This document shows, piece by piece, positions 4,879-47,801 of a stretch of DNA of 64,000 nucleotides (position 1 is the first letter of the stretch; every line of letters begins with the position of its first letter). The DNA is taken from the NCBI GenBank assembly GCA_025594325.1, contig JANHCV010000005.1:372001-436000 (forward strand), given 5' to 3'. Position numbers and translations under genes: made by a program. The notes below the pieces were generated by a model. That model was not told where the DNA came from, did no database searches, and was given only the letters and a program-made list of their open reading frames with translations. This DNA comes from Blastocladiella emersonii ATCC 22665 (lineage: Eukaryota; Fungi; Blastocladiomycota).

Positions 4879-4894
4879 CTCTCTCTCTCTCTCT
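4879..4894. repeat. (CT)8 tract / polypyrimidine tract at the outer boundary of the left arm
   Basis: ctctctctctctctct followed by ccaccgcacag; a CTGAC (branch-point-like) motif lies upstream. It looks like the 3' end of a 5'-UTR intron and coincides with the duplication breakpoint. Confidence 0.6.
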
Positions 4895-4925
4895 CCACCG
4901 CACAGTTAAATAGCAACGTAAACTG

Positions 4926-6497
4926 ATGAACGAGACCAAGCTGCACAAGACGGTGGTGATCGACGTGGTTGCGTTGACGCGGGACCTGGTGACGCCGGAC
5001 GCGACGCCGTTCCTCGCCGAGTACTTCGAGAACACTGCGGTCGACATCTCGCCCACCTTCCCGGCCGTGACGTGCTCGGCGCAGACCACGTACCTGACAG
5101 GCGTCGGCGTCGGCGAGCACGGCGTGACGGGCAACAACCTGTACGACCGTTTGTACGGCGAGCACCGCAACTGGCACCAGTCGGCGGGGCTCGTGCGGTC
5201 GCCGCGCCTGTTCCAGCGCGTCAAGGAGGCCGACCCGCGCGCCACCACGTTTTCGAATTGCTGGTGGTTCCCGATGGGCGACCGGTTCCTCGACTACGCC
5301 ATCACGCCGCGCCCGCAGTACCTGGCCGACGGCGGCAAGGCGGCCGATATCTGGACCAAGCCCGAGTCGCTGCGGCACTCGCTGCAGTCCCCTCCCGCCA
5401 GAGGTGGATTGGGCACGTTCCCGCTGCACAAGTTCTGGGGCCCCGGCGCGTCCATTGCGTCGACGCAGTGGATCGTCGACGCGACCATCCGGGTCGACCG
5501 CCAGTACGACCCGACCTTCTCGGTCGTGTACCTGCCGCACCTCGACTACACGCTGCAAAAGGTCGGTCCGGACCCGCGGCACCCGGCGGTCCTCGCGGAC
5601 CTGCGCGCCGTCGACGCCGAGGTGGCGCGGCTCGTCGCCCACTACGAGACTACGAACCCCGAAACGCGCATCATCATCCTCAGCGAGTACGGGATCCAGC
5701 CCGTGTCGCGGCCCGTGCACATCAACCGCGTGCTGCGCGAGGCCGGTTTCGTCGGAGTGCGCGCTGAGAACGGCGGCGAGACGCTCGACCCGTACGCGTC
5801 GCGCGCGTTTGCGATCCCGGACCACCAGGTCGCGCACGTCTACGTCAACGACCAGTCGGCCGATCCACCGCTCGGTAACGGGAATGTGAGCGCGGGCCAC
5901 GCGGCGGCGGTCGAGGCCGCGCGCGAGGTGCTGCTCGCGGTGCCCGGCGTCGCGCAGGTGCTGCGGCGCGATTTGGGCGAGGTCGACCGGTACTATGACC
6001 CGAGCAGTGGGCGTGTGCGCACGTCCGACCACCATTTTTGCGGGAAAACCGAGTCCCGCACGGGCGACCTCGTGGTGGTCGCCGACCACGACGCGTGGTT
6101 CACGTACTACTACTGGACGTCGCCCGACGCGGCGCCCGACTTCGCGTACACGATCAACATCCACCGCAAGCCCGGGTACGACCCGGTCGAAATGTTCTAC
6201 GCGTTCACGTCGCCGGTCCTCGGGTTCACGTACCTCGTGTTCAAGGCGCTGCTCGTGTACGCGCTGCGCATCCGCACCATTGTCGACGGGACCCGGTTCG
6301 ACGCGCACCGCATTGGCGGGTCGCATGGCGCCACGCGCGGGCTCGACCGCAGGTACTGGCCCGTGCTCGCGACCAAGCGGCGCGGCGATTTTGTGGCGGG
6401 TGCGGCGGGTCGTGGTGGGAGTGGGGTCGGCGAGCAGAGCAGTATCGCGGCCGAGGACGTGTACCACGTCATTTGGGCGCACCTCACGCGGCCGTGA
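4926..6497 (+). CDS. Alkaline phosphatase superfamily nucleotide pyrophosphatase/phosphodiesterase, bacterial EboF-like
   Basis: 523-aa intronless ORF with 'TVVIDVVAL', the nucleophile region 'FPAVTCSAQTTYLTG', 'HGVTGN', 'WHQS', 'YAITPRPQYLADG', 'LGTFPLHKFWGP', 'VYLPHLDY', 'ILSEYG', 'IHRKPGYDPVEMF' and 'GSHG'. This motif string matches bacterial EboF-type enzymes as I recall them. Confidence 0.88.
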   Translation: MNETKLHKTVVIDVVALTRDLVTPDATPFLAEYFENTAVDISPTFPAVTCSAQTTYLTGVGVGEHGVTGNNLYDRLYGEHRNWHQSAGLVRSPRLFQRVKEADPRATTFSNCWWFPMGDRFLDYAITPRPQYLADGGKAADIWTKPESLRHSLQSPPARGGLGTFPLHKFWGPGASIASTQWIVDATIRVDRQYDPTFSVVYLPHLDYTLQKVGPDPRHPAVLADLRAVDAEVARLVAHYETTNPETRIIILSEYGIQPVSRPVHINRVLREAGFVGVRAENGGETLDPYASRAFAIPDHQVAHVYVNDQSADPPLGNGNVSAGHAAAVEAAREVLLAVPGVAQVLRRDLGEVDRYYDPSSGRVRTSDHHFCGKTESRTGDLVVVADHDAWFTYYYWTSPDAAPDFAYTINIHRKPGYDPVEMFYAFTSPVLGFTYLVFKALLVYALRIRTIVDGTRFDAHRIGGSHGATRGLDRRYWPVLATKRRGDFVAGAAGRGGSGVGEQSSIAAEDVYHVIWAHLTRP

Positions 6498-7511
6498 ACA
6501 CGTTGTTGCTCGCGTTAGACTAAAATACATGCCTCTCATATTTCGCAACTGGTATCGTTCGTTTGCTCTCCTGCCTGCCTGGGCCCGTGGAGGCGATGAC
6601 GGCGAGAGCGACGCGTCCCTCAGAAAACGCGTCTCGCTGCTGCCGCCACGCGAGTTTCATTTCACCTGACCGCGTTCTTTCGAACAAGCCGAGCGCGCGA
6701 GGCGCGAGGCGTGATTGCAGCCCGTTTTCGGCAATCTTGGTCACGCACAATTACACTCGCGGTTTTGTCAAAATGACTTGGAGCCAACCTGAACCACATT
6801 GCGCTTGGTTTTCAATCGAGGGGTAGGGGCCCGCGCCACGGAGCGCGCGCGCGTGGGCCGCGAGGGAACGTGCGCCTTTGTCCAATTTGTGGCCAGGCGT
6901 GCGAGTCCTGAGCGCTTTCGAGTACACTGGGCCGAACCAAGGGGCTAGCGTGCGTTCCTCGATCGCCTTGTCCGCGAGCGCAGCAAACATGAGCATGTGC
7001 TGAAAGGGGGGTTTGGCGGCGAACCACGAGCGACCTGGTCCGCGATCCAGGCCGCTCTGCACCCCAAGCCAAGCGCCTTCTTCTTTTTTTAGACCCGTTT
7101 GATGCGTAGGTGTCCAACGTGCGTGAGGCCCGGGCTTGTCATTCCGTGTCTCAGGGTATTGGTGCGGTTCAAGGGTTCAAGACGGCCTTCATGGTCGTAG
7201 ATGGCGCGACTCTGTACTTGCGAGCCAGCCGCGCTCAATTCCACGATCGTTCTGTGTAGTGTGTAGGGATTGGAATCCGCTCTCGCGCGTGAAGCTTGCG
7301 CATGGCGTTGTTGTCAATGCTCAGCGCCGCCGCACGACGCGGCCCATGGCGCATGGGACGCGCAACCACCTGCTGGTCAGCATGCAAGGTTTCTGGTATT
7401 TGCGAATTAATGAGGGGATAAGCTCGTTTAGCGACAAAAGGAGCTTCGTTGGTGGTGCATTTTAGTCTCAGGCTCGCGGCGACAAGAAGAGAAAAATCGA
7501 GGGCTAAAGCC

Positions 7512-10483
7512 GCATCACCAAACCGCACCCCAGTCAAATAAAATCGATCGACCATCGATCCACCCTTTGAATGGGTCGGACCCAGTGCAAGGAGATTGAC
7601 GTCGACCCGATATGTTACTTTTCCGATTGACCCTTTGATCGATCTGACGCGTCGATCAAGTTTGCACGTGCACTTGAACGACGCGTCGTGTGACCTGTGA
7701 CCACTCGAACAACTATCGAACGAGATCTTTTCCCGCCCGATTGATAAAAGTAACATGTTGATCGGGTCCGCTGCAAACGTCGAACGATCACTCGCATGAC
7801 CCAGTCCTGACCTTGAACGACACACCGAATGAGACGCAATTTGATATATATACGCGGCCGCACGCGCAGGATGAGGTGGGAGGGACAGGAAGAGCCGACG
7901 ACGAAGGCCGCAGCTTGGTCGGCGACCCCCCGTGCGTGCGACGAGCGTCGCGTTGGCTCGCACGCGGGAGGCCGGCCGCAGCGCATGTCGCGAGCCCCGT
8001 CGCCTTGGCCGCGGTCGCCGTCAGTCCTGCTTCTTGACTGCTCGCGTTGTTGATGGACGGACTTGAGCTGTTCGACGGCCGACTCGAGCAGGTGGACCTT
8101 GAAGGCGGTCGGCGAGGGCAGCGGCGGGCGGTGCAGCTGGTTGACTTGAGGAGGTACTCGAGCAGCAGGTGGTGGGGACGCGCAGGGACCGAGGTGATCT
8201 CGTACGTCAGCGTGAGTCCGAGTTCTTGACCCGGCCGTGAACGCAACCCGACTCGACAGCGAGTGCAGCAGGAGCCCGGCTTGTTCAGCTACTGCGAATG
8301 CGTAATGGTCAACCAGGAGTCGGGATACAGGAAGGTCGGACCGGGTCGCAGACCTTGACCATGAACAAGTACGCGGCCGAGTGCGGGCTCGAGGGCAGCG
8401 CCGACCAGTCAGTCGGTGGGCGAGCCCCGCAGCAGCTTGTCGTGGTAAATCGAGCCTATGGGTGACGTGGCGGCGACGAGTGACCGATGATCAAGAAGGT
8501 GTTGGGCGAGCGGGTCGTGTCGGCAGGCACCAGGTCAGAACCCGAGCGCACCAGCTCGCGTGCGGTAGAACCGGACAGCGCCGACGTGCCGGGCGATTAA
8601 TCACGACGAGTACAAAAGGGGTGGAGCCCGTACCGCATGACCTCGGGCGTGCCGCGAGGGCGGACGACGAGGCGGACCTTGCCGCTGCAGCGTGGTGTAC
8701 TTGGTGACCTACTCGAGCCGGCCGTGTCAGTGTTGGTCCGCGAGGACGCCGACCGAGTCGCATGCCTCGAACTGGGACTCGCACGCGCAGCCGAGCGCGT
8801 GCTTGAGGCCAGCGACGACCCGAGCAGCGAGACCTCGCAGCGTGTTCTTGATCACAGTTGAGGTTTGTTGTCGTTGACCGAGGCTATGGGCGACGTGGCG
8901 GAGACAAGTGAGCAAAAAAGTCAGGTCAGGCGAAGAGTCCGATCGACGCGAGCACGCGAGCCACGTCGCCGGGACCCGCGCCGACGGACGACACGAGCGA
9001 GACCGCTCGGGGACTCGAAGCTCGGCGGTGCCCGCACGCAGTGCGAATCGCGCCGAGAACGCGAAGGAGAAGGACTATACCTTGCGGGCTTGGGCGCGTC
9101 GTGCGCGAGTTGACGCCGCAGGTGAGGGTCAGCCCACTTGCCGCTGCTTGGCGTACTCGGTGCCCTACTCATGGCGGCCGCGAACGTGTTAGTCTCGGTC
9201 CACAGGAGAGGTAGACCGAGTCGCACACCACGTACCTTGTCACGACCTTGTTCAGGATCGACGCCGGATGAGGGAGCGCGAGTCGCCGCGGCGCAGAGTC
9301 CGCAAAAGGGAACGCGGCTGAACCGAGCGGCGCGCTCACGTGACGTTTGCTTCGACGCGTTTCGCTCCTCCCTTCGCTGCAGCGGCGCTCTCTCCTCCTG
9401 GCGACAGCACCACGACGTCGCACCTATGACTGATCCATGAATTACTTGCTGCAAGCATGTGGCTGCGCCGTGAGCTCTGCAATTTGGTCGATACAGACCT
9501 GGTTGGCAAGCAAGCCGCGCCGCGGCGCTCCTCTCGCGTGGAGAAGGTCGTCACGGCGGTCGTGAGGGCTCTCACATCTTGAAGCTTTATGAGTCGCAAG
9601 TGAGGTGTTTTGAGCGCGTTGTTGCCCTCCGTCGCGCTTGGTCGAGCGGAAACGCGCACCTGGCTCGTCAACCTGGAGTTGGACGGCATGCAGCTCGAAA
9701 GCACGGTCGTTGAGCATTTCCACCTGTACCAGTCGGTGCCGCACGTTGTTCCGCCGGGCCTCTACGTCGTGCAGACGTTTCCTCTCTGTCCCACGCAGCC
9801 CGCCACGTGTGAGTTCCATCCACATCGTGCCGCTGTCGGCCATCTCGGCCTTCCTTCCCGTCGCGCCGAACGGGAACCGCCCCTCGTTGGCGCACTAGGG
9901 CGGGTACACCGAGTACCTCATCGCCGTGTACGACGACGACGCGAGCCTCACGCTGCTCATGATGCCGCAGATCTCCAACTTTCTTGACTTTGTGGACCGC
10001 CGCGATCCCGAAGGCGCGAACCCGACGTTTGGCAACGTGCTGGAAGCGCACGAGCCTGAGCATGGCGATACAGTGCAAAGTCGGTGCGCTACTTAACGGA
10101 TAGCTCATTCTCATCAGTTGATTCGGAGCTGCAAATTAGCTGGAACTCAATCGGCGCGAGTGGAGACGTCATTTGAGGCACGTCTCGCGCCGCTCGACCA
10201 CTTGTCTGACATTCTGCTGGGACAGATTGGCATTATATCAATCGGCGCGGGGCATATCTCGATCCACACTCGTTCGATGAGTCGTTCGACAAGCTTTTAA
10301 CTTGATCGATCAATCATGTACATAGGTCGAATGGCAAGAAAGTCGATCAACAGGTCGAATGACTTGAGCTCACGGCGATCGATACTCATTCAACGTGTGG
10401 ATCGATTTTCTTGGCCATGTCGCACGAAAACAAGTCGATCGACTCTGGATCGACTTGGCGGGTCCGGCGCGGTTTGGTGATGC
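7512..10483. mobile_element. Decayed element A bounded by ~210-bp degenerate terminal inverted repeats
   Basis: 7512-7724 and 10269-10483 are reverse-complement homologues with four colinear blocks: GCATCACCAAACCGC (exact), ATCGATCCACnnnTTGAATG, TCGATCAAGTT and TCGAACrACT(c)ATCGAACGAG. The interior has broken coding-like fragments. Confidence 0.5.
9638..10096 (+). pseudogene. Interrupted coding-like fragment inside element A (unidentified)
   Basis: The frame ...IHIVPLSAISAFLPVAPNGNRPSLAH-TAG(9896-9898)-GGYTEYLIAVYDDDASLTLLMMPQISNFLDFVDRRDPEG... continues in frame to TAA at 10094-10096 with host-like codon bias. Confidence 0.3.
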
Positions 10484-11555
10484 CCTCTTTTGAGACCGCA
10501 TCGCGGCCGGGTAGGGTGCCGACGCTCACGTGAGCGGGGCCCACGTGAGCGTCTCAAAAAACGCGTGACAGACGCGTCGTTTGTCATCTGACCGGTGTGG
10601 CGCAACGCGTCCTGGCCGTGCACGTGACCTGCTTCGGCCTAACCTGCGGGAACGCGACGGTCAACGCGGTTTGCGATGGTCGAGCGGATCGCTTTGCGCC
10701 GATCCTCGACCAGGCACGCGAGACTCCGAGCACATGAACGCGTGAGAGATGCAGAAGCGCGGCAAGCCGCCGGCGGAGTCCGTGCCTGGCGCGTGTGTTG
10801 GAAAACGGCGCCCGTGTTCGGTGCACATCCTTAAACGACGCGGTTCACCTGGGAGCCGCTAGCACGGGCTCCTTGACAGATGCGGGCGCGAGTTTAACGA
10901 TTGCACTCTGAGCGACTTGCGAGGCCTTATGAGCGTGGATTATAGTGAGTGAGGACCGCCATTTTGAACGAACGTGTGTCGTGGGAGCGATCCGCCCGTG
11001 TCAATGGTCCCGCCTATCTGTGCAATGTGGATCTTTTACAATATTGACGAGCAGCTCTGGCTCTGCTCTGCGCCGCCCTCTTTGCGTTGCAGTTCGTGTC
11101 GCCTGACGGCGCGCTCCTGACGCGGGCCACGGCCATGGTCACGCAGAGCGCCGCGAGCCGCGGCCGCCCACCCAGTTGGTTCGGACAGGTCACCAACACT
11201 CTCGGCGCGGCGCTCGCGGCTTCGGATGAGCTCCGCATGCACGCTGGTAAGGGCACAGCGTATGTGTGCGCGGACAGCTGTCCGCAGCCGCGAGCGAGAT
11301 CCCAAGCCTGCCCTCGAGTTTATGTTCATGGTTGGCGTCAGCTTTCTCGGACGCGTCGTCATGCCGCTCGCCGCGGACTCGGTTGACAAGATCTACTACG
11401 TCTTCCACATCGTATTACAGGCAGGACTATTTACATGGACGCCTCGCTCCGCCGCGCTGATTCGCCAGACGTGGCGGCGGGTGCAGTCGTCTTTGTGTAA
11501 GCGGGTCGCTGGAACTCGCTGTTCGCGTCCCCAACGGGAACCACTCGAGCTTCCG

Positions 11556-11870
11556 CTCTCCGAACTGTGGGGCGCCTTCGCCGCCGCCGCGTCCGCTCGC
11601 CGCGGCGAAAAGCTCACCCTCATGCTTAACGATAATGGCGTTGTCGAATCGACTTAACGATAAAGGCGTTGTCGGCTCGGCCTCCAAGTTGCTCTTGCCC
11701 TCCTCCCCAAGAATGCGAGTCCGCGCAACGTGCTCGCTCGAATGGGCAGTGCTCCGCTGGATCATCGCGACCCACGAGTTCCAGGTCAACTTTGAGTGGG
11801 TCCACAGCCACGCCGGGAACTCAGGCACCAGAACGCCGACGTGCTCGCCAACGAGGGCGCTGCCGCGCAT
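11556..11870 (+). pseudogene. Frameshifted RNase H domain relic (retroelement-type)
   Basis: 'SELWGAFAAAASARRGEKLTLMLNDNGVV' (E/D motif region), then '..W..LRWII...FQVNFEWVHSHAGNSG', and after a 1-nt shift at about 11827 'QNADVLANEG'. Together these give the RNase HI C-terminal W-V-x-x-H-x-G-x-x-G-N-x-x-A-D-x-L-A motif. A local 22-bp tandem duplication (11625-11646/11653-11674) also breaks the frame. Confidence 0.6.
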
Positions 11871-12504
11871 CTGCCACTGGGAGTCGTGGCCGCCGTCCGC
11901 GCGGACCCGGACACACCCTTCACGGTGCGCTGGTGCGGCTGGGACCTCAACTCAAACCCGGGGCGCGCTCCCCGCCGCCTGCACACAGCGTGCGGCACGT
12001 CTCCCTGCTCGCCCTGACTCCACCAGCATCACCGGTTCGTTCGCCGAGCAGCTTGGAGGCTCAAACCGTATCAAATGCACCGCGGTCTCTGTCGTGGACG
12101 CGCCGCTCGCCGCATGGTTCAAGCGGATGTACAACCACCTGCGCGAGCTCATTGACCCGCGTCTCGCTCTCCCCTCCGCGACGGCCATCGCCTTGAGCGC
12201 CGCGCAGGAGCATGCTTGGCGCCCGCGCTGCAACGCGCGCGATTGCTGACGCCGCGCCCGTGACTCAAGTCGGTGCCCTGCCGCAACTCAACGCAATCGA
12301 CCAGCCGCACCGCCATCCGCTGAAGCGCGCGCACCGCGCAGCACTTGATACGCGCTATGCTGCGGCGCGCTATGCTGCAACGCGCCGCTCTCATACCCTT
12401 GCCAAAATTACTGCCGTAGCGGCGATGTTGAGGACTCGTTCAACGGGCGCTTACACGAAATTCAAGCGAACGCTTACACGCAATTCAAGCGAACGCGCTC
12501 TCGC

Positions 12505-12587
12505 ACGGCGCAAGCGCCCAACGTGGCGCGGGCTTTAGCCCTCGATTGAAAACCAGACGCGAAGCGTCGAGGTGGCTCAAGTATAAT
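12505..12587 (-). repeat. 83-bp dispersed element head (copy in left arm)
   Basis: Reverse complement matches 27766-27848 at 81/83 positions. Confidence 0.85.
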
Positions 12588-15336
12588 TCGACCACGCCGG
12601 CCCGCTCCCCCAGTCATGGATTGGAACCCAAAGTCGGACGTCCTGGGCCATCCTGTTCTCGCCACTCTATCTTTGCGGGGCTGTGTACTGTGAGCGCCGT
12701 CTCCCTCAAGGCACTGCGGTGCGAGACGGCCAGCCACACACGCGTGAGACATGCGTACGTGATATCGCGACGCGTCCAAGTCGAGTCAAGTCGAGTCGAC
12801 GACGGTTCCGGCCAAACGAAAATCAGCTCATCTGAAGCGGTTGGTCGTTGGTTGCACACGGGCGCGAGCACCGTCATGAAAGAGGTGGTTGTAAGACGGG
12901 TTTCGCAAGTGGGTCAAGGACGATATGTTTGCTCCCCGCTCCGCTGACGCAGGCTGCGACATCAGTAAACACGCTTGCCTCGCTCAAGGTGTGCCAACAA
13001 GCGACATGGGTAAGTGCACGAGCCCCGCGTCCAACGGTTGCGTTCTGGTGAAAGTGAACCCGAGGAGAAAGGTTTGTTTACGCGGGCGGGCATGCCACAG
13101 CGTGCTCCGTTCCAAGTCGCTTTGAGGCTCGCCGCGCGAGGCAGAGCCAGAGATGCGGATCGAGTGCGTGGTCTCGTCAACGAGAGTTTCCGCCGAGCCT
13201 GTACTACATCGCTGGTGAATCAATCAACTTTCCTTCGCGCATTTTCTCCCCAGAAGGCTCAATCCGCAATGAGTGAGTACATGCAGAGCACAGCGTGCTC
13301 CAAGGTTTTTTCCCGCTGGTCGCACTAACTCCGTAGCTCATGCTCCAAGCGCCAGTTGCAAACAACATGCATGAATAAGCACAGCTGGTCGTTTCGCAAT
13401 TCATGCGGTTTGCGTGGCGTTCCAGGGGGAACGCGAGGCACAGGAGTGCATATCATTGATACCATAGAGTTGAACAGGTCTCACGAGGCCGTGACGGTTG
13501 AGAACTCTCTTTATATCCGCGGAGCAGGGCCAAACGAGAGAGGGAAGGAGCAACTTTCTCGGCTGGTCCAACGAAACGGAGGCAGCGGTGGGCACGCGCT
13601 CCGGATCAGTGGCACGATCACGGATCCGCGCTTTCACTTGGCCGCACCCGCGAGTCAGGAAATAGCAGGTTCTTTTGCGCTTGCTAACCAAACGCGCTGC
13701 GTTCGCGTGCAATTGATGGGACGCCGGTGCTGGAGCCCGCTGGTTTCGTGTGTAATCTATTTTTTTTTTTTTTCAACTGAGCTTGCCAGGGACATGTACG
13801 TCATTCTGAAGTGGACAGTTACCACTGACGGATCGCTCCGCAGCACAGGTTCGCCAGCAGTGACATGTGGTGGGAAGTACTGCTCAGGCGGAGCTCTCGA
13901 GCTCGCGGTCCGCATCCCGTCCGGGAATCTCGCGCTTGACAGCAAAAACAAGGAATTTCTCAACAACCCGACAACCAAGATGCTCGTATGCACTCTGCGG
14001 GGCACGCTTCAGCGCAGCACGACTGCTCGAGCGCGTTTGTTCTGCCCTGGTGGGCCATCCCGACCCTACGGGATCCGTCCGTGCCACCTGTGAAAAGCAT
14101 TGTGCCGTTGCCAAAACCTAGGCCAACACAAAGGCTGACAGGCTTGCTGAGCAAGAAGCTGTTGCACTTTCTTCGATTAAAGGTTTTTTTCTTCGCGCGG
14201 CTACAATGGCAAATCAGACCTGCAGCGGATCTTGTGCGGCCATTTCACCGCCCACGACAAATCCCAATTCGCTCAGCTGGTGTGAGCGCCATTTCCATCA
14301 ACGAGCGCATATTTACTAGCCGCCCCCAGATGGACTGCGTCGTCGCAGCACGCACGCCAAGCACCAGCTCCGTTGGCGAGTTGCTGCCCATTTTGCAGAT
14401 CTCACGCGTCCCACGTACTTGGAATCTCGTGAGCCTGGTTGAGGTTCGGTGCAACGTGCTCCGCTCAAGTTTCAATGACCCGCGTCGTTGGGCGTCGCGC
14501 TTCCGTGGGTTGTGGCAAAGCAGGTCACGCGCCCTGCCAAGACGCGTTGCGCCACAGCGGATAGATGGCAAACGACGCGTTTGCCATGCGTTTTGTCCAA
14601 GTTACTTACATGGATCGCGCTCTCATGCGTTCATCGCCCTACTCCCGCCGCGAAGCGTCCTAAAATTGAGAGCTTTAGTCTTCAACATGGATCGTTGTGA
14701 CGGGCTGTTTCAGCTGCAGCGCGCCACACAACCACGGAAGCACAAGCCCACTGTCCGACCGCGCTTCTGTTGACCTTCCAGCCGAACGGTGAGGGCACAA
14801 ACTGGACCGACGCGCATATCAACCCAAGAGACCGACTTTCTCGCTCTGGACGCCGCTTGGAGCTCGATCTTTGCAGCGCAGTGAACCACTAGCTGGGCAG
14901 CGTGCAACCACGCTTGACAGCCGTTTCGCAATGGAGCTCATGATCCCGTTTTCAGATGTGAAACCCCTCCTAAAGTCAATTATATTCAATCGGGGGATAA
15001 TGATTTCTGACCAGTGCAAGTTGCGTAAGTCAACACCAGATGGGCTCACACACTTGGAGTGGCCGCCGTTGCCAGAATAAGCTCGCGATTACTCGCTGGA
15101 GGTTACTGTGCCGTCATTGAACGCAATTGCCCCGGTCCTAGTGCCTGTTGTCAACACTGGGAGTACCTTGATCAGCAGGTGCAGCGAGCGTCAGCAACTG
15201 CACGCTGTCCTGGGAGGCGCGATACGACTTCAAATACTGCGGATCACGATGTGAGATATGTATTAGGTGTACGATAGACTGTATAAGACCGCAATAGGGA
15301 CAAAAAGGAAGGCCCCGCGACCGCGGGGCAGGCACG

Positions 15337-15347
15337 AAAAAAGAAAA
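15337..15347 (-). terminator. Pol III terminator (T4-C-T6) of the left tRNA-Ser
   Basis: Oligo-T run immediately 3' of the tRNA on the minus strand. Confidence 0.7.
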
Positions 15348-15429
15348 CGACAACGGCAGGGTTCGAACCTGCGCACGCATAGCGTAACCGCTTAGTAGGC
15401 GGTCTCCTTAACCACTCGGACACGTTGTC
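15348..15429 (-). tRNA. tRNA-Ser, anticodon ACT (82 nt, long variable arm)
   Basis: GACAACG TG TCCGAGTGGTTAAGGA G ACCGC CTACTAA GCGGT TACGCTATGCGT GC GCAGG TTCGAAC CCTGC CGTTGTC G. All stems pair, A and B boxes are intact, the variable stem has 4 bp and the discriminator is G73. The layout is that of eukaryotic tRNA-Ser(GCT), but position 34 is A. Confidence 0.92.
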
Positions 15430-15534
15430 GAAGTCGCCATCCCGCTGGCTGACCTCATACCACCTTTGGTCTTTCTCACCACTCCCTGCAACGTAATCTA
15501 CGCAACGCATCAACACCCCTCCAAAAATCTCGAG

Positions 15535-24800: not shown

Positions 24801-24912
24801 CTCGCCGCCATCTCCCCCTCCACTTCCTCACCCTTCCTGCAAAGAAAGACCCTAACCACCATCAACAACATATCATGTTATCAACAAGACGGCTCACGCC
24901 GAGCTGGGGCCT

Positions 24913-27589: not shown

Positions 27590-27765
27590 GGTGGCCAGGG
27601 TTGTTACATTCGCAACGGGAGCGGCGGGAGGCGGCGGGCGTCCGTTTCGGAGCGCCGCCCAAACAAGCCTCGCTCGCCTTCCAGAGCCGAGATCCCGTGA
27701 CATGGTGTGATAGAAAACGCGTCTCGCGTCGGGCGCGAGACACTTTGCTTATGGGTCAGAACCAT

Positions 27766-27848
27766 ATTATACTTGAGGCACCTAGACGCTTCGCGTCTGG
27801 TTTTCAATCGAGGGCTAAAGCCCGCGCCACGTTGGGCGCTTGCGCCGT
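27766..27848 (+). repeat. 83-bp dispersed element head (spacer copy) with two hairpins
   Basis: ATTATACTTGAGGCACCTAGACGCTTCGCGTCTGGTTTTCAATCGAGGGCTAAAGCCCGCGCCACGTTGGGCGCTTGCGCCGT contains GACGC-TTC-GCGTC and GGGC-TAAA-GCCC and matches 39995-40077 and the reverse complement of 12505-12587. Confidence 0.85.
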
Positions 27849-27866
27849 TTCGCGCGTGGCAGTACA

Positions 27867-27994
27867 GCGCGTCGCAGCTTCGCGCGTTGCAGCTTTGTGC
27901 GTCGCAGCTTTGCGCGTCGCAGCTTTGCGCGTCGCAGCTTTGCGCGTCGCAGCTTTGCGCGTCGCAGCTTTGCGCGTCGCAGCTTTGCGCGTCG
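27867..27994 (+). repeat. 15-bp minisatellite (GCGCGTCGCAGCTTT) x8 plus partial
   Basis: Eight contiguous units counted from 27867 to 27986 (first three with single substitutions) plus a partial unit to 27994; no spacers. Confidence 0.95.
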
Positions 27995-37047: not shown

Positions 37048-37152
37048 CTCGAGATTTTTGGAGGGGTGTTGATGCGTTGCGTAGATTACGTTGCAGGGAG
37101 TGGTGAGAAAGACCAAAGGTGGTATGAGGTCAGCCAGCGGGATGGCGACTTC

Positions 37153-37234
37153 GACAACGTGTCCGAGTGGTTAAGGAGACCGCCTACTAAGCGGTTACGC
37201 TATGCGTGCGCAGGTTCGAACCCTGCCGTTGTCG
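37153..37234 (+). tRNA. tRNA-Ser, anticodon ACT (mirror copy)
   Basis: Same 82-nt cloverleaf; anticodon ACT at 37186-37188. Confidence 0.92.
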
Positions 37235-37245
37235 TTTTCTTTTTT
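37235..37245 (+). terminator. Pol III terminator (TTTTCTTTTTT)
   Basis: Oligo-T directly after tRNA G73. Confidence 0.7.
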
Positions 37246-39994
37246 CGTGCCTGCCCCGCGGTCGCGGGGCCTTCCTTTTTGTCCCTATTGCGGTCTTATA
37301 CAGTCTATCGTACACCTAATACATATCTCACATCGTGATCCGCAGTATTTGAAGTCGTATCGCGCCTCCCAGGACAGCGTGCAGTTGCTGACGCTCGCTG
37401 CACCTGCTGATCAAGGTACTCCCAGTGTTGACAACAGGCACTAGGACCGGGGCAATTGCGTTCAATGACGGCACAGTAACCTCCAGCGAGTAATCGCGAG
37501 CTTATTCTGGCAACGGCGGCCACTCCAAGTGTGTGAGCCCATCTGGTGTTGACTTACGCAACTTGCACTGGTCAGAAATCATTATCCCCCGATTGAATAT
37601 AATTGACTTTAGGAGGGGTTTCACATCTGAAAACGGGATCATGAGCTCCATTGCGAAACGGCTGTCAAGCGTGGTTGCACGCTGCCCAGCTAGTGGTTCA
37701 CTGCGCTGCAAAGATCGAGCTCCAAGCGGCGTCCAGAGCGAGAAAGTCGGTCTCTTGGGTTGATATGCGCGTCGGTCCAGTTTGTGCCCTCACCGTTCGG
37801 CTGGAAGGTCAACAGAAGCGCGGTCGGACAGTGGGCTTGTGCTTCCGTGGTTGTGTGGCGCGCTGCAGCTGAAACAGCCCGTCACAACGATCCATGTTGA
37901 AGACTAAAGCTCTCAATTTTAGGACGCTTCGCGGCGGGAGTAGGGCGATGAACGCATGAGAGCGCGATCCATGTAAGTAACTTGGACAAAACGCATGGCA
38001 AACGCGTCGTTTGCCATCTATCCGCTGTGGCGCAACGCGTCTTGGCAGGGCGCGTGACCTGCTTTGCCACAACCCACGGAAGCGCGACGCCCAACGACGC
38101 GGGTCATTGAAACTTGAGCGGAGCACGTTGCACCGAACCTCAACCAGGCTCACGAGATTCCAAGTACGTGGGACGCGTGAGATCTGCAAAATGGGCAGCA
38201 ACTCGCCAACGGAGCTGGTGCTTGGCGTGCGTGCTGCGACGACGCAGTCCATCTGGGGGCGGCTAGTAAATATGCGCTCGTTGATGGAAATGGCGCTCAC
38301 ACCAGCTGAGCGAATTGGGATTTGTCGTGGGCGGTGAAATGGCCGCACAAGATCCGCTGCAGGTCTGATTTGCCATTGTAGCCGCGCGAAGAAAAAAACC
38401 TTTAATCGAAGAAAGTGCAACAGCTTCTTGCTCAGCAAGCCTGTCAGCCTTTGTGTTGGCCTAGGTTTTGGCAACGGCACAATGCTTTTCACAGGTGGCA
38501 CGGACGGATCCCGTAGGGTCGGGATGGCCCACCAGGGCAGAACAAACGCGCTCGAGCAGTCGTGCTGCGCTGAAGCGTGCCCCGCAGAGTGCATACGAGC
38601 ATCTTGGTTGTCGGGTTGTTGAGAAATTCCTTGTTTTTGCTGTCAAGCGCGAGATTCCCGGACGGGATGCGGACCGCGAGCTCGAGAGCTCCGCCTGAGC
38701 AGTACTTCCCACCACATGTCACTGCTGGCGAACCTGTGCTGCGGAGCGATCCGTCAGTGGTAACTGTCCACTTCAGAATGACGTACATGTCCCTGGCAAG
38801 CTCAGTTGAAAAAAAAAAAAAATAGATTACACACGAAACCAGCGGGCTCCAGCACCGGCGTCCCATCAATTGCACGCGAACGCAGCGCGTTTGGTTAGCA
38901 AGCGCAAAAGAACCTGCTATTTCCTGACTCGCGGGTGCGGCCAAGTGAAAGCGCGGATCCGTGATCGTGCCACTGATCCGGAGCGCGTGCCCACCGCTGC
39001 CTCCGTTTCGTTGGACCAGCCGAGAAAGTTGCTCCTTCCCTCTCTCGTTTGGCCCTGCTCCGCGGATATAAAGAGAGTTCTCAACCGTCACGGCCTCGTG
39101 AGACCTGTTCAACTCTATGGTATCAATGATATGCACTCCTGTGCCTCGCGTTCCCCCTGGAACGCCACGCAAACCGCATGAATTGCGAAACGACCAGCTG
39201 TGCTTATTCATGCATGTTGTTTGCAACTGGCGCTTGGAGCATGAGCTACGGAGTTAGTGCGACCAGCGGGAAAAAACCTTGGAGCACGCTGTGCTCTGCA
39301 TGTACTCACTCATTGCGGATTGAGCCTTCTGGGGAGAAAATGCGCGAAGGAAAGTTGATTGATTCACCAGCGATGTAGTACAGGCTCGGCGGAAACTCTC
39401 GTTGACGAGACCACGCACTCGATCCGCATCTCTGGCTCTGCCTCGCGCGGCGAGCCTCAAAGCGACTTGGAACGGAGCACGCTGTGGCATGCCCGCCCGC
39501 GTAAACAAACCTTTCTCCTCGGGTTCACTTTCACCAGAACGCAACCGTTGGACGCGGGGCTCGTGCACTTACCCATGTCGCTTGTTGGCACACCTTGAGC
39601 GAGGCAAGCGTGTTTACTGATGTCGCAGCCTGCGTCAGCGGAGCGGGGAGCAAACATATCGTCCTTGACCCACTTGCGAAACCCGTCTTACAACCACCTC
39701 TTTCATGACGGTGCTCGCGCCCGTGTGCAACCAACGACCAACCGCTTCAGATGAGCTGATTTTCGTTTGGCCGGAACCGTCGTCGACTCGACTTGACTCG
39801 ACTTGGACGCGTCGCGATATCACGTACGCATGTCTCACGCGTGTGTGGCTGGCCGTCTCGCACCGCAGTGCCTTGAGGGAGACGGCGCTCACAGTACACA
39901 GCCCCGCAAAGATAGAGTGGCGAGAACAGGATGGCCCAGGACGTCCGACTTTGGGTTCCAATCCATGACTGGGGGAGCGGGCCGGCGTGGTCGA

Positions 39995-40077
39995 ATTATA
40001 CTTGAGCCACCTCGACGCTTCGCGTCTGGTTTTCAATCGAGGGCTAAAGCCCGCGCCACGTTGGGCGCTTGCGCCGT
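39995..40077 (+). repeat. 83-bp dispersed element head (right-arm copy)
   Basis: 81/83 match to 27766-27848, same orientation. Confidence 0.85.
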
Positions 40078-40711
40078 GCGAGAGCGCGTTCGCTTGAATT
40101 GCGTGTAAGCGTTCGCTTGAATTTCGTGTAAGCGCCCGTTGAACGAGTCCTCAACATCGCCGCTACGGCAGTAATTTTGGCAAGGGTATGAGAGCGGCGC
40201 GTTGCAGCATAGCGCGCCGCAGCATAGCGCGTATCAAGTGCTGCGCGGTGCGCGCGCTTCAGCGGATGGCGGTGCGGCTGGTCGATTGCGTTGAGTTGCG
40301 GCAGGGCACCGACTTGAGTCACGGGCGCGGCGTCAGCAATCGCGCGCGTTGCAGCGCGGGCGCCAAGCATGCTCCTGCGCGGCGCTCAAGGCGATGGCCG
40401 TCGCGGAGGGGAGAGCGAGACGCGGGTCAATGAGCTCGCGCAGGTGGTTGTACATCCGCTTGAACCATGCGGCGAGCGGCGCGTCCACGACAGAGACCGC
40501 GGTGCATTTGATACGGTTTGAGCCTCCAAGCTGCTCGGCGAACGAACCGGTGATGCTGGTGGAGTCAGGGCGAGCAGGGAGACGTGCCGCACGCTGTGTG
40601 CAGGCGGCGGGGAGCGCGCCCCGGGTTTGAGTTGAGGTCCCAGCCGCACCAGCGCACCGTGAAGGGTGTGTCCGGGTCCGCGCGGACGGCGGCCACGACT
40701 CCCAGTGGCAG

Positions 40712-41026
40712 ATGCGCGGCAGCGCCCTCGTTGGCGAGCACGTCGGCGTTCTGGTGCCTGAGTTCCCGGCGTGGCTGTGGACCCACTCAAAGTTGACCTG
40801 GAACTCGTGGGTCGCGATGATCCAGCGGAGCACTGCCCATTCGAGCGAGCACGTTGCGCGGACTCGCATTCTTGGGGAGGAGGGCAAGAGCAACTTGGAG
40901 GCCGAGCCGACAACGCCTTTATCGTTAAGTCGATTCGACAACGCCATTATCGTTAAGCATGAGGGTGAGCTTTTCGCCGCGGCGAGCGGACGCGGCGGCG
41001 GCGAAGGCGCCCCACAGTTCGGAGAG
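40712..41026 (-). pseudogene. Mirror copy of the RNase H relic
   Basis: Mirror of 11556-11870. Confidence 0.6.
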
Positions 41027-42098
41027 CGGAAGCTCGAGTGGTTCCCGTTGGGGACGCGAACAGCGAGTTCCAGCGACCCGCTTACACAAAGACGACTGCA
41101 CCCGCCGCCACGTCTGGCGAATCAGCGCGGCGGAGCGAGGCGTCCATGTAAATAGTCCTGCCTGTAATACGATGTGGAAGACGTAGTAGATCTTGTCAAC
41201 CGAGTCCGCGGCGAGCGGCATGACGACGCGTCCGAGAAAGCTGACGCCAACCATGAACATAAACTCGAGGGCAGGCTTGGGATCTCGCTCGCGGCTGCGG
41301 ACAGCTGTCCGCGCACACATACGCTGTGCCCTTACCAGCGTGCATGCGGAGCTCATCCGAAGCCGCGAGCGCCGCGCCGAGAGTGTTGGTGACCTGTCCG
41401 AACCAACTGGGTGGGCGGCCGCGGCTCGCGGCGCTCTGCGTGACCATGGCCGTGGCCCGCGTCAGGAGCGCGCCGTCAGGCGACACGAACTGCAACGCAA
41501 AGAGGGCGGCGCAGAGCAGAGCCAGAGCTGCTCGTCAATATTGTAAAAGATCCACATTGCACAGATAGGCGGGACCATTGACACGGGCGGATCGCTCCCA
41601 CGACACACGTTCGTTCAAAATGGCGGTCCTCACTCACTATAATCCACGCTCATAAGGCCTCGCAAGTCGCTCAGAGTGCAATCGTTAAACTCGCGCCCGC
41701 ATCTGTCAAGGAGCCCGTGCTAGCGGCTCCCAGGTGAACCGCGTCGTTTAAGGATGTGCACCGAACACGGGCGCCGTTTTCCAACACACGCGCCAGGCAC
41801 GGACTCCGCCGGCGGCTTGCCGCGCTTCTGCATCTCTCACGCGTTCATGTGCTCGGAGTCTCGCGTGCCTGGTCGAGGATCGGCGCAAAGCGATCCGCTC
41901 GACCATCGCAAACCGCGTTGACCGTCGCGTTCCCGCAGGTTAGGCCGAAGCAGGTCACGTGCACGGCCAGGACGCGTTGCGCCACACCGGTCAGATGACA
42001 AACGACGCGTCTGTCACGCGTTTTTTGAGACGCTCACGTGGGCCCCGCTCACGTGAGCGTCGGCACCCTACCCGGCCGCGATGCGGTCTCAAAAGAGG

Positions 42099-45070
42099 GC
42101 ATCACCAAACCGCGCCGGACCCGCCAAGTCGATCCAGAGTCGATCGACTTGTTTTCGTGCGACATGGCCAAGAAAATCGATCCACACGTTGAATGAGTAT
42201 CGATCGCCGTGAGCTCAAGTCATTCGACCTGTTGATCGACTTTCTTGCCATTCGACCTATGTACATGATTGATCGATCAAGTTAAAAGCTTGTCGAACGA
42301 CTCATCGAACGAGTGTGGATCGAGATATGCCCCGCGCCGATTGATATAATGCCAATCTGTCCCAGCAGAATGTCAGACAAGTGGTCGAGCGGCGCGAGAC
42401 GTGCCTCAAATGACGTCTCCACTCGCGCCGATTGAGTTCCAGCTAATTTGCAGCTCCGAATCAACTGATGAGAATGAGCTATCCGTTAAGTAGCGCACCG
42501 ACTTTGCACTGTATCGCCATGCTCAGGCTCGTGCGCTTCCAGCACGTTGCCAAACGTCGGGTTCGCGCCTTCGGGATCGCGGCGGTCCACAAAGTCAAGA
42601 AAGTTGGAGATCTGCGGCATCATGAGCAGCGTGAGGCTCGCGTCGTCGTCGTACACGGCGATGAGGTACTCGGTGTACCCGCCCTAGTGCGCCAACGAGG
42701 GGCGGTTCCCGTTCGGCGCGACGGGAAGGAAGGCCGAGATGGCCGACAGCGGCACGATGTGGATGGAACTCACACGTGGCGGGCTGCGTGGGACAGAGAG
42801 GAAACGTCTGCACGACGTAGAGGCCCGGCGGAACAACGTGCGGCACCGACTGGTACAGGTGGAAATGCTCAACGACCGTGCTTTCGAGCTGCATGCCGTC
42901 CAACTCCAGGTTGACAAGCCAGGTGCGCGTTTCCGCTCGACCAAGCGCGACGGAGGGCAACAACGCGCTCAAAACACCTCACTTGCGACTCATAAAGCTT
43001 CAAGATGTGAGAGCCCTCACGACCGCCGTGACGACCTTCTCCACGCGAGAGGAGCGCCGCGGCGCGGCTTGCTTGCCAACCAGGTCTGTATCGACCAAAT
43101 TGCAGAGCTCACGGCGCAGCCACATGCTTGCAGCAAGTAATTCATGGATCAGTCATAGGTGCGACGTCGTGGTGCTGTCGCCAGGAGGAGAGAGCGCCGC
43201 TGCAGCGAAGGGAGGAGCGAAACGCGTCGAAGCAAACGTCACGTGAGCGCGCCGCTCGGTTCAGCCGCGTTCCCTTTTGCGGACTCTGCGCCGCGGCGAC
43301 TCGCGCTCCCTCATCCGGCGTCGATCCTGAACAAGGTCGTGACAAGGTACGTGGTGTGCGACTCGGTCTACCTCTCCTGTGGACCGAGACTAACACGTTC
43401 GCGGCCGCCATGAGTAGGGCACCGAGTACGCCAAGCAGCGGCAAGTGGGCTGACCCTCACCTGCGGCGTCAACTCGCGCACGACGCGCCCAAGCCCGCAA
43501 GGTATAGTCCTTCTCCTTCGCGTTCTCGGCGCGATTCGCACTGCGTGCGGGCACCGCCGAGCTTCGAGTTCCCGAGCGGTCTCGCTCGTGTCGTCCGTCG
43601 GCGCGGGTCCCGGCGACGTGGCTCGCGTGCTCGCGTCGATCGGACTCTTCGCCTGACCTGACTTTTTTGCTCACTTGTCTCCGCCACGTCGCCCATAGCC
43701 TCGGTCAACGACAACAAACCTCAACTGTGATCAAGAACACGCTGCGAGGTCTCGCTGCTCGGGTCGTCGCTGGCCTCAAGCACGCGCTCGGCTGCGCGTG
43801 CGAGTCCCAGTTCGAGGCATGCGACTCGGTCGGCGTCCTCGCGGACCAACACTGACACGGCCGGCTCGAGTAGGTCACCAAGTACACCACGCTGCAGCGG
43901 CAAGGTCCGCCTCGTCGTCCGCCCTCGCGGCACGCCCGAGGTCATGCGGTACGGGCTCCACCCCTTTTGTACTCGTCGTGATTAATCGCCCGGCACGTCG
44001 GCGCTGTCCGGTTCTACCGCACGCGAGCTGGTGCGCTCGGGTTCTGACCTGGTGCCTGCCGACACGACCCGCTCGCCCAACACCTTCTTGATCATCGGTC
44101 ACTCGTCGCCGCCACGTCACCCATAGGCTCGATTTACCACGACAAGCTGCTGCGGGGCTCGCCCACCGACTGACTGGTCGGCGCTGCCCTCGAGCCCGCA
44201 CTCGGCCGCGTACTTGTTCATGGTCAAGGTCTGCGACCCGGTCCGACCTTCCTGTATCCCGACTCCTGGTTGACCATTACGCATTCGCAGTAGCTGAACA
44301 AGCCGGGCTCCTGCTGCACTCGCTGTCGAGTCGGGTTGCGTTCACGGCCGGGTCAAGAACTCGGACTCACGCTGACGTACGAGATCACCTCGGTCCCTGC
44401 GCGTCCCCACCACCTGCTGCTCGAGTACCTCCTCAAGTCAACCAGCTGCACCGCCCGCCGCTGCCCTCGCCGACCGCCTTCAAGGTCCACCTGCTCGAGT
44501 CGGCCGTCGAACAGCTCAAGTCCGTCCATCAACAACGCGAGCAGTCAAGAAGCAGGACTGACGGCGACCGCGGCCAAGGCGACGGGGCTCGCGACATGCG
44601 CTGCGGCCGGCCTCCCGCGTGCGAGCCAACGCGACGCTCGTCGCACGCACGGGGGGTCGCCGACCAAGCTGCGGCCTTCGTCGTCGGCTCTTCCTGTCCC
44701 TCCCACCTCATCCTGCGCGTGCGGCCGCGTATATATATCAAATTGCGTCTCATTCGGTGTGTCGTTCAAGGTCAGGACTGGGTCATGCGAGTGATCGTTC
44801 GACGTTTGCAGCGGACCCGATCAACATGTTACTTTTATCAATCGGGCGGGAAAAGATCTCGTTCGATAGTTGTTCGAGTGGTCACAGGTCACACGACGCG
44901 TCGTTCAAGTGCACGTGCAAACTTGATCGACGCGTCAGATCGATCAAAGGGTCAATCGGAAAAGTAACATATCGGGTCGACGTCAATCTCCTTGCACTGG
45001 GTCCGACCCATTCAAAGGGTGGATCGATGGTCGATCGATTTTATTTGACTGGGGTGCGGTTTGGTGATGC
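42099..45070. mobile_element. Mirror copy of decayed TIR element A
   Basis: Mirror of 7512-10483; both observed arm-to-arm SNPs lie in it. Confidence 0.5.
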
Positions 45071-46084
45071 GGCTTTAGCCCTCGATTTTTCTCTTCTTGT
45101 CGCCGCGAGCCTGAGACTAAAATGCACCACCAACGAAGCTCCTTTTGTCGCTAAACGAGCTTATCCCCTCATTAATTCGCAAATACCAGAAACCTTGCAT
45201 GCTGACCAGCAGGTGGTTGCGCGTCCCATGCGCCATGGGCCGCGTCGTGCGGCGGCGCTGAGCATTGACAACAACGCCATGCGCAAGCTTCACGCGCGAG
45301 AGCGGATTCCAATCCCTACACACTACACAGAACGATCGTGGAATTGAGCGCGGCTGGCTCGCAAGTACAGAGTCGCGCCATCTACGACCATGAAGGCCGT
45401 CTTGAACCCTTGAACCGCACCAATACCCTGAGACACGGAATGACAAGCCCGGGCCTCACGCACGTTGGACACCTACGCATCAAACGGGTCTAAAAAAAGA
45501 AGAAGGCGCTTGGCTTGGGGTGCAGAGCGGCCTGGATCGCGGACCAGGTCGCTCGTGGTTCGCCGCCAAACCCCCCTTTCAGCACATGCTCATGTTTGCT
45601 GCGCTCGCGGACAAGGCGATCGAGGAACGCACGCTAGCCCCTTGGTTCGGCCCAGTGTACTCGAAAGCGCTCAGGACTCGCACGCCTGGCCACAAATTGG
45701 ACAAAGGCGCACGTTCCCTCGCGGCCCACGCGCGCGCGCTCCGTGGCGCGGGCCCCTACCCCTCGATTGAAAACCAAGCGCAATGTGGTTCAGGTTGGCT
45801 CCAAGTCATTTTGACAAAACCGCGAGTGTAATTGTGCGTGACCAAGATTGCCGAAAACGGGCTGCAATCACGCCTCGCGCCTCGCGCGCTCGGCTTGTTC
45901 GAAAGAACGCGGTCAGGTGAAATGAAACTCGCGTGGCGGCAGCAGCGAGACGCGTTTTCTGAGGGACGCGTCGCTCTCGCCGTCATCGCCTCCACGGGCC
46001 CAGGCAGGCAGGAGAGCAAACGAACGATACCAGTTGCGAAATATGAGAGGCATGTATTTTAGTCTAACGCGAGCAACAACGTGT

Positions 46085-47656
46085 TCACGGCCGCGTGAGG
46101 TGCGCCCAAATGACGTGGTACACGTCCTCGGCCGCGATACTGCTCTGCTCGCCGACCCCACTCCCACCACGACCCGCCGCACCCGCCACAAAATCGCCGC
46201 GCCGCTTGGTCGCGAGCACGGGCCAGTACCTGCGGTCGAGCCCGCGCGTGGCGCCATGCGACCCGCCAATGCGGTGCGCGTCGAACCGGGTCCCGTCGAC
46301 AATGGTGCGGATGCGCAGCGCGTACACGAGCAGCGCCTTGAACACGAGGTACGTGAACCCGAGGACCGGCGACGTGAACGCGTAGAACATTTCGACCGGG
46401 TCGTACCCGGGCTTGCGGTGGATGTTGATCGTGTACGCGAAGTCGGGCGCCGCGTCGGGCGACGTCCAGTAGTAGTACGTGAACCACGCGTCGTGGTCGG
46501 CGACCACCACGAGGTCGCCCGTGCGGGACTCGGTTTTCCCGCAAAAATGGTGGTCGGACGTGCGCACACGCCCACTGCTCGGGTCATAGTACCGGTCGAC
46601 CTCGCCCAAATCGCGCCGCAGCACCTGCGCGACGCCGGGCACCGCGAGCAGCACCTCGCGCGCGGCCTCGACCGCCGCCGCGTGGCCCGCGCTCACATTC
46701 CCGTTACCGAGCGGTGGATCGGCCGACTGGTCGTTGACGTAGACGTGCGCGACCTGGTGGTCCGGGATCGCAAACGCGCGCGACGCGTACGGGTCGAGCG
46801 TCTCGCCGCCGTTCTCAGCGCGCACTCCGACGAAACCGGCCTCGCGCAGCACGCGGTTGATGTGCACGGGCCGCGACACGGGCTGGATCCCGTACTCGCT
46901 GAGGATGATGATGCGCGTTTCGGGGTTCGTAGTCTCGTAGTGGGCGACGAGCCGCGCCACCTCGGCGTCGACGGCGCGCAGGTCCGCGAGGACCGCCGGG
47001 TGCCGCGGGTCCGGACCGACCTTTTGCAGCGTGTAGTCGAGGTGCGGCAGGTACACGACCGAGAAGGTCGGGTCGTACTGGCGGTCGACCCGGATGGTCG
47101 CGTCGACGATCCACTGCGTCGACGCAATGGACGCGCCGGGGCCCCAGAACTTGTGCAGCGGGAACGTGCCCAATCCACCTCTGGCGGGAGGGGACTGCAG
47201 CGAGTGCCGCAGCGACTCGGGCTTGGTCCAGATATCGGCCGCCTTGCCGCCGTCGGCCAGGTACTGCGGGCGCGGCGTGATGGCGTAGTCGAGGAACCGG
47301 TCGCCCATCGGGAACCACCAGCAATTCGAAAACGTGGTGGCGCGCGGGTCGGCCTCCTTGACGCGCTGGAACAGGCGCGGCGACCGCACGAGCCCCGCCG
47401 ACTGGTGCCAGTTGCGGTGCTCGCCGTACAAACGGTCGTACAGGTTGTTGCCCGTCACGCCGTGCTCGCCGACGCCGACGCCTGTCAGGTACGTGGTCTG
47501 CGCCGAGCACGTCACGGCCGGGAAGGTGGGCGAGATGTCGACCGCAGTGTTCTCGAAGTACTCGGCGAGGAACGGCGTCGCGTCCGGCGTCACCAGGTCC
47601 CGCGTCAACGCAACCACGTCGATCACCACCGTCTTGTGCAGCTTGGTCTCGTTCAT
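46085..47656 (-). CDS. Second copy of the EboF-like phosphodiesterase
   Basis: Translation identical to 4926-6497. Only 33 bp of upstream sequence is shared with the left copy. Confidence 0.85.
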   Translation of the reverse strand: MNETKLHKTVVIDVVALTRDLVTPDATPFLAEYFENTAVDISPTFPAVTCSAQTTYLTGVGVGEHGVTGNNLYDRLYGEHRNWHQSAGLVRSPRLFQRVKEADPRATTFSNCWWFPMGDRFLDYAITPRPQYLADGGKAADIWTKPESLRHSLQSPPARGGLGTFPLHKFWGPGASIASTQWIVDATIRVDRQYDPTFSVVYLPHLDYTLQKVGPDPRHPAVLADLRAVDAEVARLVAHYETTNPETRIIILSEYGIQPVSRPVHINRVLREAGFVGVRAENGGETLDPYASRAFAIPDHQVAHVYVNDQSADPPLGNGNVSAGHAAAVEAAREVLLAVPGVAQVLRRDLGEVDRYYDPSSGRVRTSDHHFCGKTESRTGDLVVVADHDAWFTYYYWTSPDAAPDFAYTINIHRKPGYDPVEMFYAFTSPVLGFTYLVFKALLVYALRIRTIVDGTRFDAHRIGGSHGATRGLDRRYWPVLATKRRGDFVAGAAGRGGSGVGEQSSIAAEDVYHVIWAHLTRP

Positions 47657-47801
47657 CAGTTTACGTTGCTATTTAACTGTGCGGTGGAGGGAGAGGACCG
47701 GCAGCGCGCCCTCGCCGAGCTTTGGTCGACTTCACCGCACCCCACCGTACGGCAAAACAAGCGCGGTTCGGAAAATTACGTGTATTCACAAGCTGCTGCG
47801 A

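Follow-up and report, generated by a model that had tools for sequence, protein, structure and literature searches.

One question that is raised by the genome of the fungus Blastocladiella emersonii ATCC 22665 regards the origin of a 42.8-kb palindrome, in which two nearly identical arms of 19.5 kb face each other across a short spacer. Did such a structure arise in the organism as a recent inverted duplication, is it an old palindrome whose arms are kept identical by gene conversion, or was one segment written twice during assembly? In this work we looked at a stretch of 64,000 nt, here called the window, which covers positions 372,001 to 436,000 of contig JANHCV010000005.1 (assembly GCA_025594325.1). 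Positions are those of the window unless they carry a contig prefix; C17 is the contig carrying the window, which in these coordinates is C17:372001-436000. The palindrome had been pointed out in an earlier sequence-only reading, which left the three origins side by side. We show that one of its inner junctions is novel and cuts a transposon through a 9-bp microhomology, and from this anatomy we lean towards a segmental duplication that is real, young and inverted, that arose by fold-back (template switch) and that was accompanied by an adjacent loss.

Geometry of the palindrome and its inner junctions

The window was searched for inverted repeats and the arms were then compared base by base. 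Only one large inverted pair was returned by the search, 4887-24417 with 28165-47695, with arms of 19,531 nt. The left arm (4887-24417, forward strand) has a clean core from 4893, preceded by the CT-tract bases 4887-4892, five of which pair among six; the right arm (28165-47695, reverse strand) is its reverse complement, and between them lies a spacer of 3,747 nt (24418-28164). Along the entire length the paired positions obey p + p' = 52582, with zero indels and three mismatches (4892, 9012 and 9666). Two of these mismatches lie inside the core (4893-24417), giving a core divergence of 2 in 19,525 sites (~1e-4) and an arm identity of 99.98%. A match of 19.5 kb cannot arise by chance. The size, the spacer and the near-identity of the arms given by the sequence-only reading are thus reproduced by both the repeat search and the base comparison, and its constant coordinate sum without net indel holds base by base in the full pairwise alignment of the arms that it had proposed. 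A CT tract at the outer breakpoint and a CGCGCG sequence at the inner one, which it had also named, can both be seen.

Another feature that had drawn attention is a 14-nt homopolymer of equal length in both arms. The T14 at 13760-13773 and the A14 at 38809-38822 are indeed both 14 nt long, and further pairs of equal length (the range in all being 11-14 nt) are found at 19810-19820 / 32762-32772 and 22732-22744 / 29838-29850. These equal lengths are no evidence either way, because the assembler takes in homopolymer-compressed reads and the polishing pools reads of both arms (PMC9730499).

The palindrome is located at 377-420 kb, inside a contig of 2,209,773 nt, in an assembly of 32.65 Mb and 21 contigs. 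Its flanks hold ordinary eukaryotic genes, with a FAD_binding_4 gene on the left and PAPA-1 and lipin genes on the right. The published ATCC 22665 assembly likewise has 21 contigs, with an N50 of 2.02 Mb and a size of 34.27 Mb, compared to 32.65 Mb here (PMC9730499). PacBio HiFi reads, on average 10.5 kb long and at a depth of roughly 190x, went into it; the La Jolla Assembler was used together with purge_dups and Pilon, and the purging reduced 247 contigs to 21 (PMC9730499). The words "palindrome" and "inverted" are absent from the text of the genome paper (PMC9730499).

The inner junctions were analyzed by whole-genome searches with 1.4-kb probes laid over each of them and by alignments to the fetched copies of the elements that they hit. 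The left inner boundary lies within a dispersed element, here called element A (24220-26157, forward strand), whose terminus is at about 24220 (TTAACCCATAGACGAC). Element A has five other copies, with flanks that are unrelated until the terminus, and from there all five continue unbroken through the equivalent of 24417/24418. Because element A crosses this boundary unbroken in the window and likewise in its five other copies, the boundary 24417/24418 represents ancestral sequence. Element A opens with TTAACCC, and its first 200 nt are ~97-98% conserved among the copies, compared to ~90-93% in the next kb.

At the right inner junction a second dispersed element, element C, is truncated (27988-28173, forward strand; more than 20 genomic copies at 94-98%). 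This piece is 96.8-97.9% identical to nine fetched copies, all of which extend about 336 nt further, starting AGTGTGCAC. The ~336-nt continuation was searched for in the window and was found nowhere in it; past 28173 the window reads the reverse complement of element A instead of element C. What the two sequences have in common at the join is the 9-bp microhomology CGCGCGAAG (28165-28173, forward strand), which is found both in the interior of element C and in the inverted arm. It is present in eight of the nine other copies of element C, the ninth having AGCGCGAAG. The inverted partner, CTTCGCGCG, lies inside element A (24409-24417, forward strand), and we propose it as the landing site of the fold-back or template switch. 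On both sides of the common 9 bp elements A and C are unrelated, and a microhomology of at least 9 bp has a probability of 1.3e-4, based on 2,000,000 simulated junctions drawn from the window. The right inner junction, 28164/28165, is novel, as had been claimed earlier: element C is cut there and joined through the 9 bp, and the left boundary 24417/24418 is the ancestral one.

The two core substitutions fall within a dispersed repeat family (7511-10483), so that the copies of this family can be used to judge which arm has changed. At 9012 the left arm has G and the right arm A (43570, other strand), with A in the family copies; at 9666 the left arm has C and the right arm T (42916, other strand), with C in the family copies. 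The derived changes are one transition in each arm, A to G on the left and C to T on the right. Judged in this way, one derived change per arm is what would be expected from two real copies that mutate independently.

Origin of the palindrome and its rival explanations

Of the origins listed by the sequence-only reading, the breakpoint anatomy favors a recent inverted duplication by template switch or fold-back. An inverted copy stands beside its original with a single-copy spacer of 3,747 nt between them, the novel junction carries the 9-bp inverted microhomology, and on the distal side of the spacer sequence has gone, with ~336 nt of element C missing from the window. These three traits define such duplications (PMC3907307). 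These fold-back scars probably make the palindrome a real, though ordinary, sort of recent duplication. We consider this account, a young fold-back duplication with adjacent loss, to be the likelier one, with considerable room left for others.

The ancestral order, in such a model, would have been the left flank, the 19.5-kb segment, the spacer, the rest of element C, further sequence and then the right flank. A 3' end that was broken, or stalled at a collapsed fork, within element C and ending in CGCGCGAAG could have paired with the inverted CTTCGCGCG in element A, which lies 3.75 kb back, either on that very strand or on the sister one. Synthesis from CTTCGCGCG would then have copied the 19.5-kb segment backwards, until the copy was linked up again with the right flank by a second switch or an end-joining in a CT/GA tract, with loss of the intervening sequence. 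After the duplication each arm would have gained one transition. These steps may have followed one another in a different order, and they may belong to a single replicative event or to a break and a fold-back with later healing.

The outer junctions carry less information than the inner ones. Apart from the arm itself, each outer junction region is single in the genome. Beyond 4893/47689 five of the six next bases still match, within the CT/GA tract, so that the outer right junction is spread over 47690-47695, which is 107-112 nt past the stop codon of the PAPA-1 gene. That 47689/47690 is a novel outer junction is unprovable from the sequence, since close to the spacer there is no difference between the arms, and the assembled orientation of the spacer is possibly arbitrary. 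The earlier claim that it is novel can only be brought back to gene geometry, namely a divergent gene pair 443 nt apart on the left and a gap of 145 nt on the right, and this geometry favors an ancestral left outer junction and a new right one. A sensitive blastn comparison of the left flank with the right flank, and of the spacer with itself, gave composition-level weak matches only, and there is no evidence for an older and larger palindrome with the same centre.

Several points weigh against a young fold-back event. Both core substitutions are located within 4.8 kb of the outer end, with a probability of ~0.06 under uniform scatter, and such an outer clustering could hint at conversion or at a collapse of the inner part of the arms. 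The inner 14.7 kb of each arm, from site 9666 to the spacer, is beyond unique anchoring by most reads, whose mean length is 10.5 kb; differences in this inner part could have been smoothed away in assembly, and the spacer orientation, too, may be arbitrary. In addition, conversion would clearly seem to act in this region, judging from an older inverted pair (C17:331591-343887 and 463523-473543) that encloses the palindrome and has a conversion-like core.

The last point leads to one possible alternative, that the fold-back duplication is old and that gene conversion, recurring between its arms, has kept them near-identical. The conversion-like core of the enclosing pair and the outer position of the two substitutions would both fit such a history. 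Yet, outside the arms there is no diverged homology, and the identity of the arms reaches right up to the two original breakpoints, the places at which one would expect conversion to work least well. The arms have accumulated no indels and no private insertions in a region that is rich in transposons, and nothing requires an old age. A young event is the simplest reading of the age, based on the arm comparison, and we regard conversion of an old palindrome as unlikely, even if it is the strongest of the alternatives. Another hypothesis is that a single-copy segment was written twice, by chimeric or fold-back reads or by mis-joined haplotigs. The arms are longer than most reads, near-perfect identity is expected when a collapsed repeat edge is traversed twice, the purging was heavy (247 to 21 contigs; PMC9730499), and multiple mirrored pairs of matches in the same assembly make a systematic cause possible. 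However, both ends of the spacer join the same arm end, which means that a linear molecule must hold two copies of the arm, and the palindrome sits in the interior of a 2.21-Mb contig with unique, gene-bearing flanks. Fold-back read chimeras would lack a 3.7-kb spacer, are individually unique and would lose at a HiFi depth of ~190x. What we find differs from an assembly chimera in the 3,747-nt spacer, in the distance from any contig end and in arms that differ independently; an artefact would also have to explain a junction that cuts a transposon through a 9-bp microhomology, and one derived substitution in each arm, close enough for reads to link it to that arm's own unique flank. An assembly origin is, in our view, improbable.

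Even less probable, to a degree that we hardly expect it, is that the palindrome serves as a cassette programmed to invert (a flip-flop), or that selection has amplified the phosphodiesterase gene of ENPP type that it carries. Long identical inverted arms would permit inversion of the spacer, and an intact enzyme gene has been doubled; against this, the open reading frames (ORFs) tested in the arms and spacer hold no recombinase or other Pfam domain besides ENPP, the arms are mainly repeat debris, and the second copy of the gene keeps only 33 nt of the common upstream sequence. A site-specific invertible segment in the strict sense was rejected on the same absence of a recombinase domain from the ORFs tested and on arms that are 19.5 kb long instead of short sites. 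Non-allelic homologous recombination (NAHR) between inverted transposons was also rejected, as the joined elements A and C are unrelated and have only 9 bp in common.

The fold-back duplication, if real, is a clean natural example from an early-diverging fungus. Both parental sequences at its key breakpoint can be reconstructed from sister copies of the transposons, which is rare outside of events that were found in patients or selected in the laboratory. The structure belongs to a well-known kind, and it would be of use mainly as an example that is clean and can be dated, and as a caution to those who annotate the region or map reads to it. Across the arms, short reads will be placed wrongly. 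Identical inverted arms of 19.5 kb should also allow the spacer to flip by homologous recombination, so its orientation may not be fixed.

Comparison with known systems and other mirrored pairs

How does this palindrome compare to inverted structures in other organisms? We know of no orthologous palindrome. The ampliconic palindromes of the human Y chromosome have large, gene-bearing arms that are more than 99.9% identical, a unique spacer and gene conversion between the arms. The palindrome described here resembles them in its large, near-identical and gene-carrying arms around a unique spacer, but its arms are mostly transposon debris, and nothing shows an age beyond that suggested by the identity. 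In origin-dependent inverted-repeat amplification (ODIRA) of yeast, the template is switched at the replication fork, at inverted repeats that are short and interrupted, and the outcome is an inverted triplication that has two junctions of this type. Such a switch at short inverted repeats is common to both, whereas here there is a duplication, one junction at a short inverted repeat and a loss alongside it. An ODIRA triplication was rejected also by a genome search with the arm, which gave pieces of dispersed repeats and no third near-full-length copy.

The closest likeness is to the human fold-back inverted duplications described by Hermetz et al. (2014; PMC3907307). In these, the original is followed by a single-copy spacer of a few kb and by the inverted copy, a short inverted microhomology links the spacer's distal end to the point where the inverted copy begins, the sequence that lay past the spacer is missing and the product is stabilised by a second junction, all of which is similar to what we describe. 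In the 21 sequenced human cases the spacer is 766-70,466 bp long, with a median of 3,428 bp, and 13 of the 21 junctions have 2-8 bp of inverted microhomology (PMC3907307), compared to 9 bp here. Where a telomere or a translocation heals the human duplications, the palindrome is interstitial and rejoined to the same contig. Its duplicated segment is also smaller (19.5 kb versus hundreds of kb to Mb), and a fungal strain carries it in fixed form, or at least in its assembly, where the human ones are de novo events in patients.

Foldback inversions are found in Saccharomyces cerevisiae as well, where hairpins form at short inverted sequences, including hairpins with a large loop, and secondary rearrangements stabilise the products, as reported by Li, Putnam, and Kolodner (2020; PMC7467729). 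The yeast events differ from the present one in having been selected in mutant backgrounds and in secondary joins that are mostly by homology, whereas the second join of the palindrome lies in a low-complexity CT tract.

Another question is whether the palindrome is alone in its genome. For the analysis of its neighbourhood, C17:323001-484000 was reconstructed from fetched pieces. The older inverted pair that encloses the palindrome is 97.9-98.6% identical, with its arms ~120 kb apart. Its 5.5-kb core (C17:337091-342590) is 0-0.4% diverged and its flanks 1-9%, and within the core lies a copy of a 3.5-kb repeat, which matches those in the arms of the palindrome at 99.86% identity or more. From these differences in divergence, an old inverted duplication seems to have undergone gene conversion. 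In the left arm of the enclosing pair there is also an insertion of 2.3 kb (C17:334378-336741). A smaller inverted pair, C17:444126-445183 with 458911-459969, measures 1,059 nt at 99.06% identity, with 13.7 kb between its arms.

Mirrored repeat matches of equal score and with constant coordinate sums are found on other contigs too: C16:192082-195417 with 213317-216652, C5:923620-927025 with 934261-937666, and on C3 both 644595-649730 with 674003-679139 and 70127-70622 with 118263-118758. These are hints at the level of coordinates, and they are probably further large palindromes with the same transposon families. Based on these further pairs and on the older, partly homogenised enclosing pair, one can speculate that fold-back inverted duplications form an unusually large population in Blastocladiella emersonii and that the palindrome is a newly arisen one, an idea which we hold as doubtful. 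If it were true, the birth, homogenisation and decay of palindromes could be read from one genome, and such a population might reflect a peculiar machinery for the suppression of hairpins or fold-backs. Among the genes related to fold-back suppression, Mre11 is present in the genome; the SAE2/CtIP domain (PF08573) had no match in this genome and none in the control genomes either.

Genes and repeats carried by the palindrome

From the analysis of GC content by codon position, host-like coding can be found in just two stretches per arm. The outermost gene encodes the ENPP-type phosphodiesterase; its left copy (4926-6497, forward strand) has 523 codons, a GC content at third codon positions (GC3) of 0.91 and an ATG that lies 33 nt inside the arm, and the ORF of its right copy (46085-47656, reverse strand) is identical. 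The ORF is intact and has a full-length type I phosphodiesterase/nucleotide pyrophosphatase domain (Phosphodiest, PF01663, E 2.7e-46). The left copy is divergent from the FAD_binding_4 gene of the left flank (2467-4482, reverse strand), with 443 nt between them. The ATG of the right copy is located 145 nt from the stop of the upstream PAPA-1-domain gene (47802-50048), a single-copy gene that lies on the same, reverse strand. Upstream of the ATG the two copies have only 33 nt in common. The region contains two ENPP-type genes that are identical, the right one behind foreign upstream sequence. It also holds two tRNA-Ser(ACU) genes together with doubled transposon debris. The earlier statement that an intact enzyme gene and a tRNA are doubled is therefore correct for the coding sequences, and falls short for the enzyme gene as a whole, since its right copy shares only this short upstream stretch.

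The repeats take up most of what remains. A 3.5-kb dispersed repeat (20598-24092, forward strand; mirror 28490-31984) has many genomic copies at 83-93%, and a Pfam domain search of its ORFs found no domain. Four of its copies, at 20598-24092, 28490-31984, C17:337789-341284 and C17:466131-469625, are at least 99.86% identical and lie within 130 kb; they may indicate either very recent activity or local homogenisation. Of the ORFs of the arms and spacer that were scanned against Pfam, none passed the cut-off except the ENPP gene.

The spacer is unique as a whole in the assembly, with pieces of dispersed repeats at both ends. It begins with the continuation of element A to 26157, followed by a unique part (26158-27763) that has no other genomic match, a small element with a 15-nt array and the piece of element C. 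The small dispersed element (27764-27994) adjoins element C, and its 15-nt tandem array varies from a few to more than 12 units between genomic copies. The unique part holds an ORF of 440 codons (26381-27703, reverse strand), whose codon use is not host-like, as it is absent from the list of high-GC3 frames. Motifs like G-x-L-D-V-L-R-W-W are repeated in it, and it scores 0.96 by atlas feature against ankyrin-repeat clusters; the best Pfam match, Ank_4 with an E of 0.017, is under the cut-off. A degenerate ankyrin-repeat protein is a possible lead for this ORF.

Further inside each arm the second of the host-like stretches is an open frame of 1,149 codons from stop to stop (15412-18861, forward strand; mirror 33721-37170), with a GC3 of 0.86-0.87 and one interrupting stop at 17566-17568. 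No Pfam or NCBIfam family was found for this frame, and its language-model matches are weak and non-specific. It adjoins the tRNA-Ser gene, which has the anticodon ACT in a normal-looking loop (C-T-ACT-A-A) and is located at 15347-15430 (reverse strand) in the left arm and at 37152-37235 (forward strand) in the right arm. Contig C1 carries a 97% copy of the block of tRNA and ORF (15344-19024). In this copy, the counterpart of the tRNA is a Ser-TGA, and compensatory changes are seen in the acceptor and anticodon stems.

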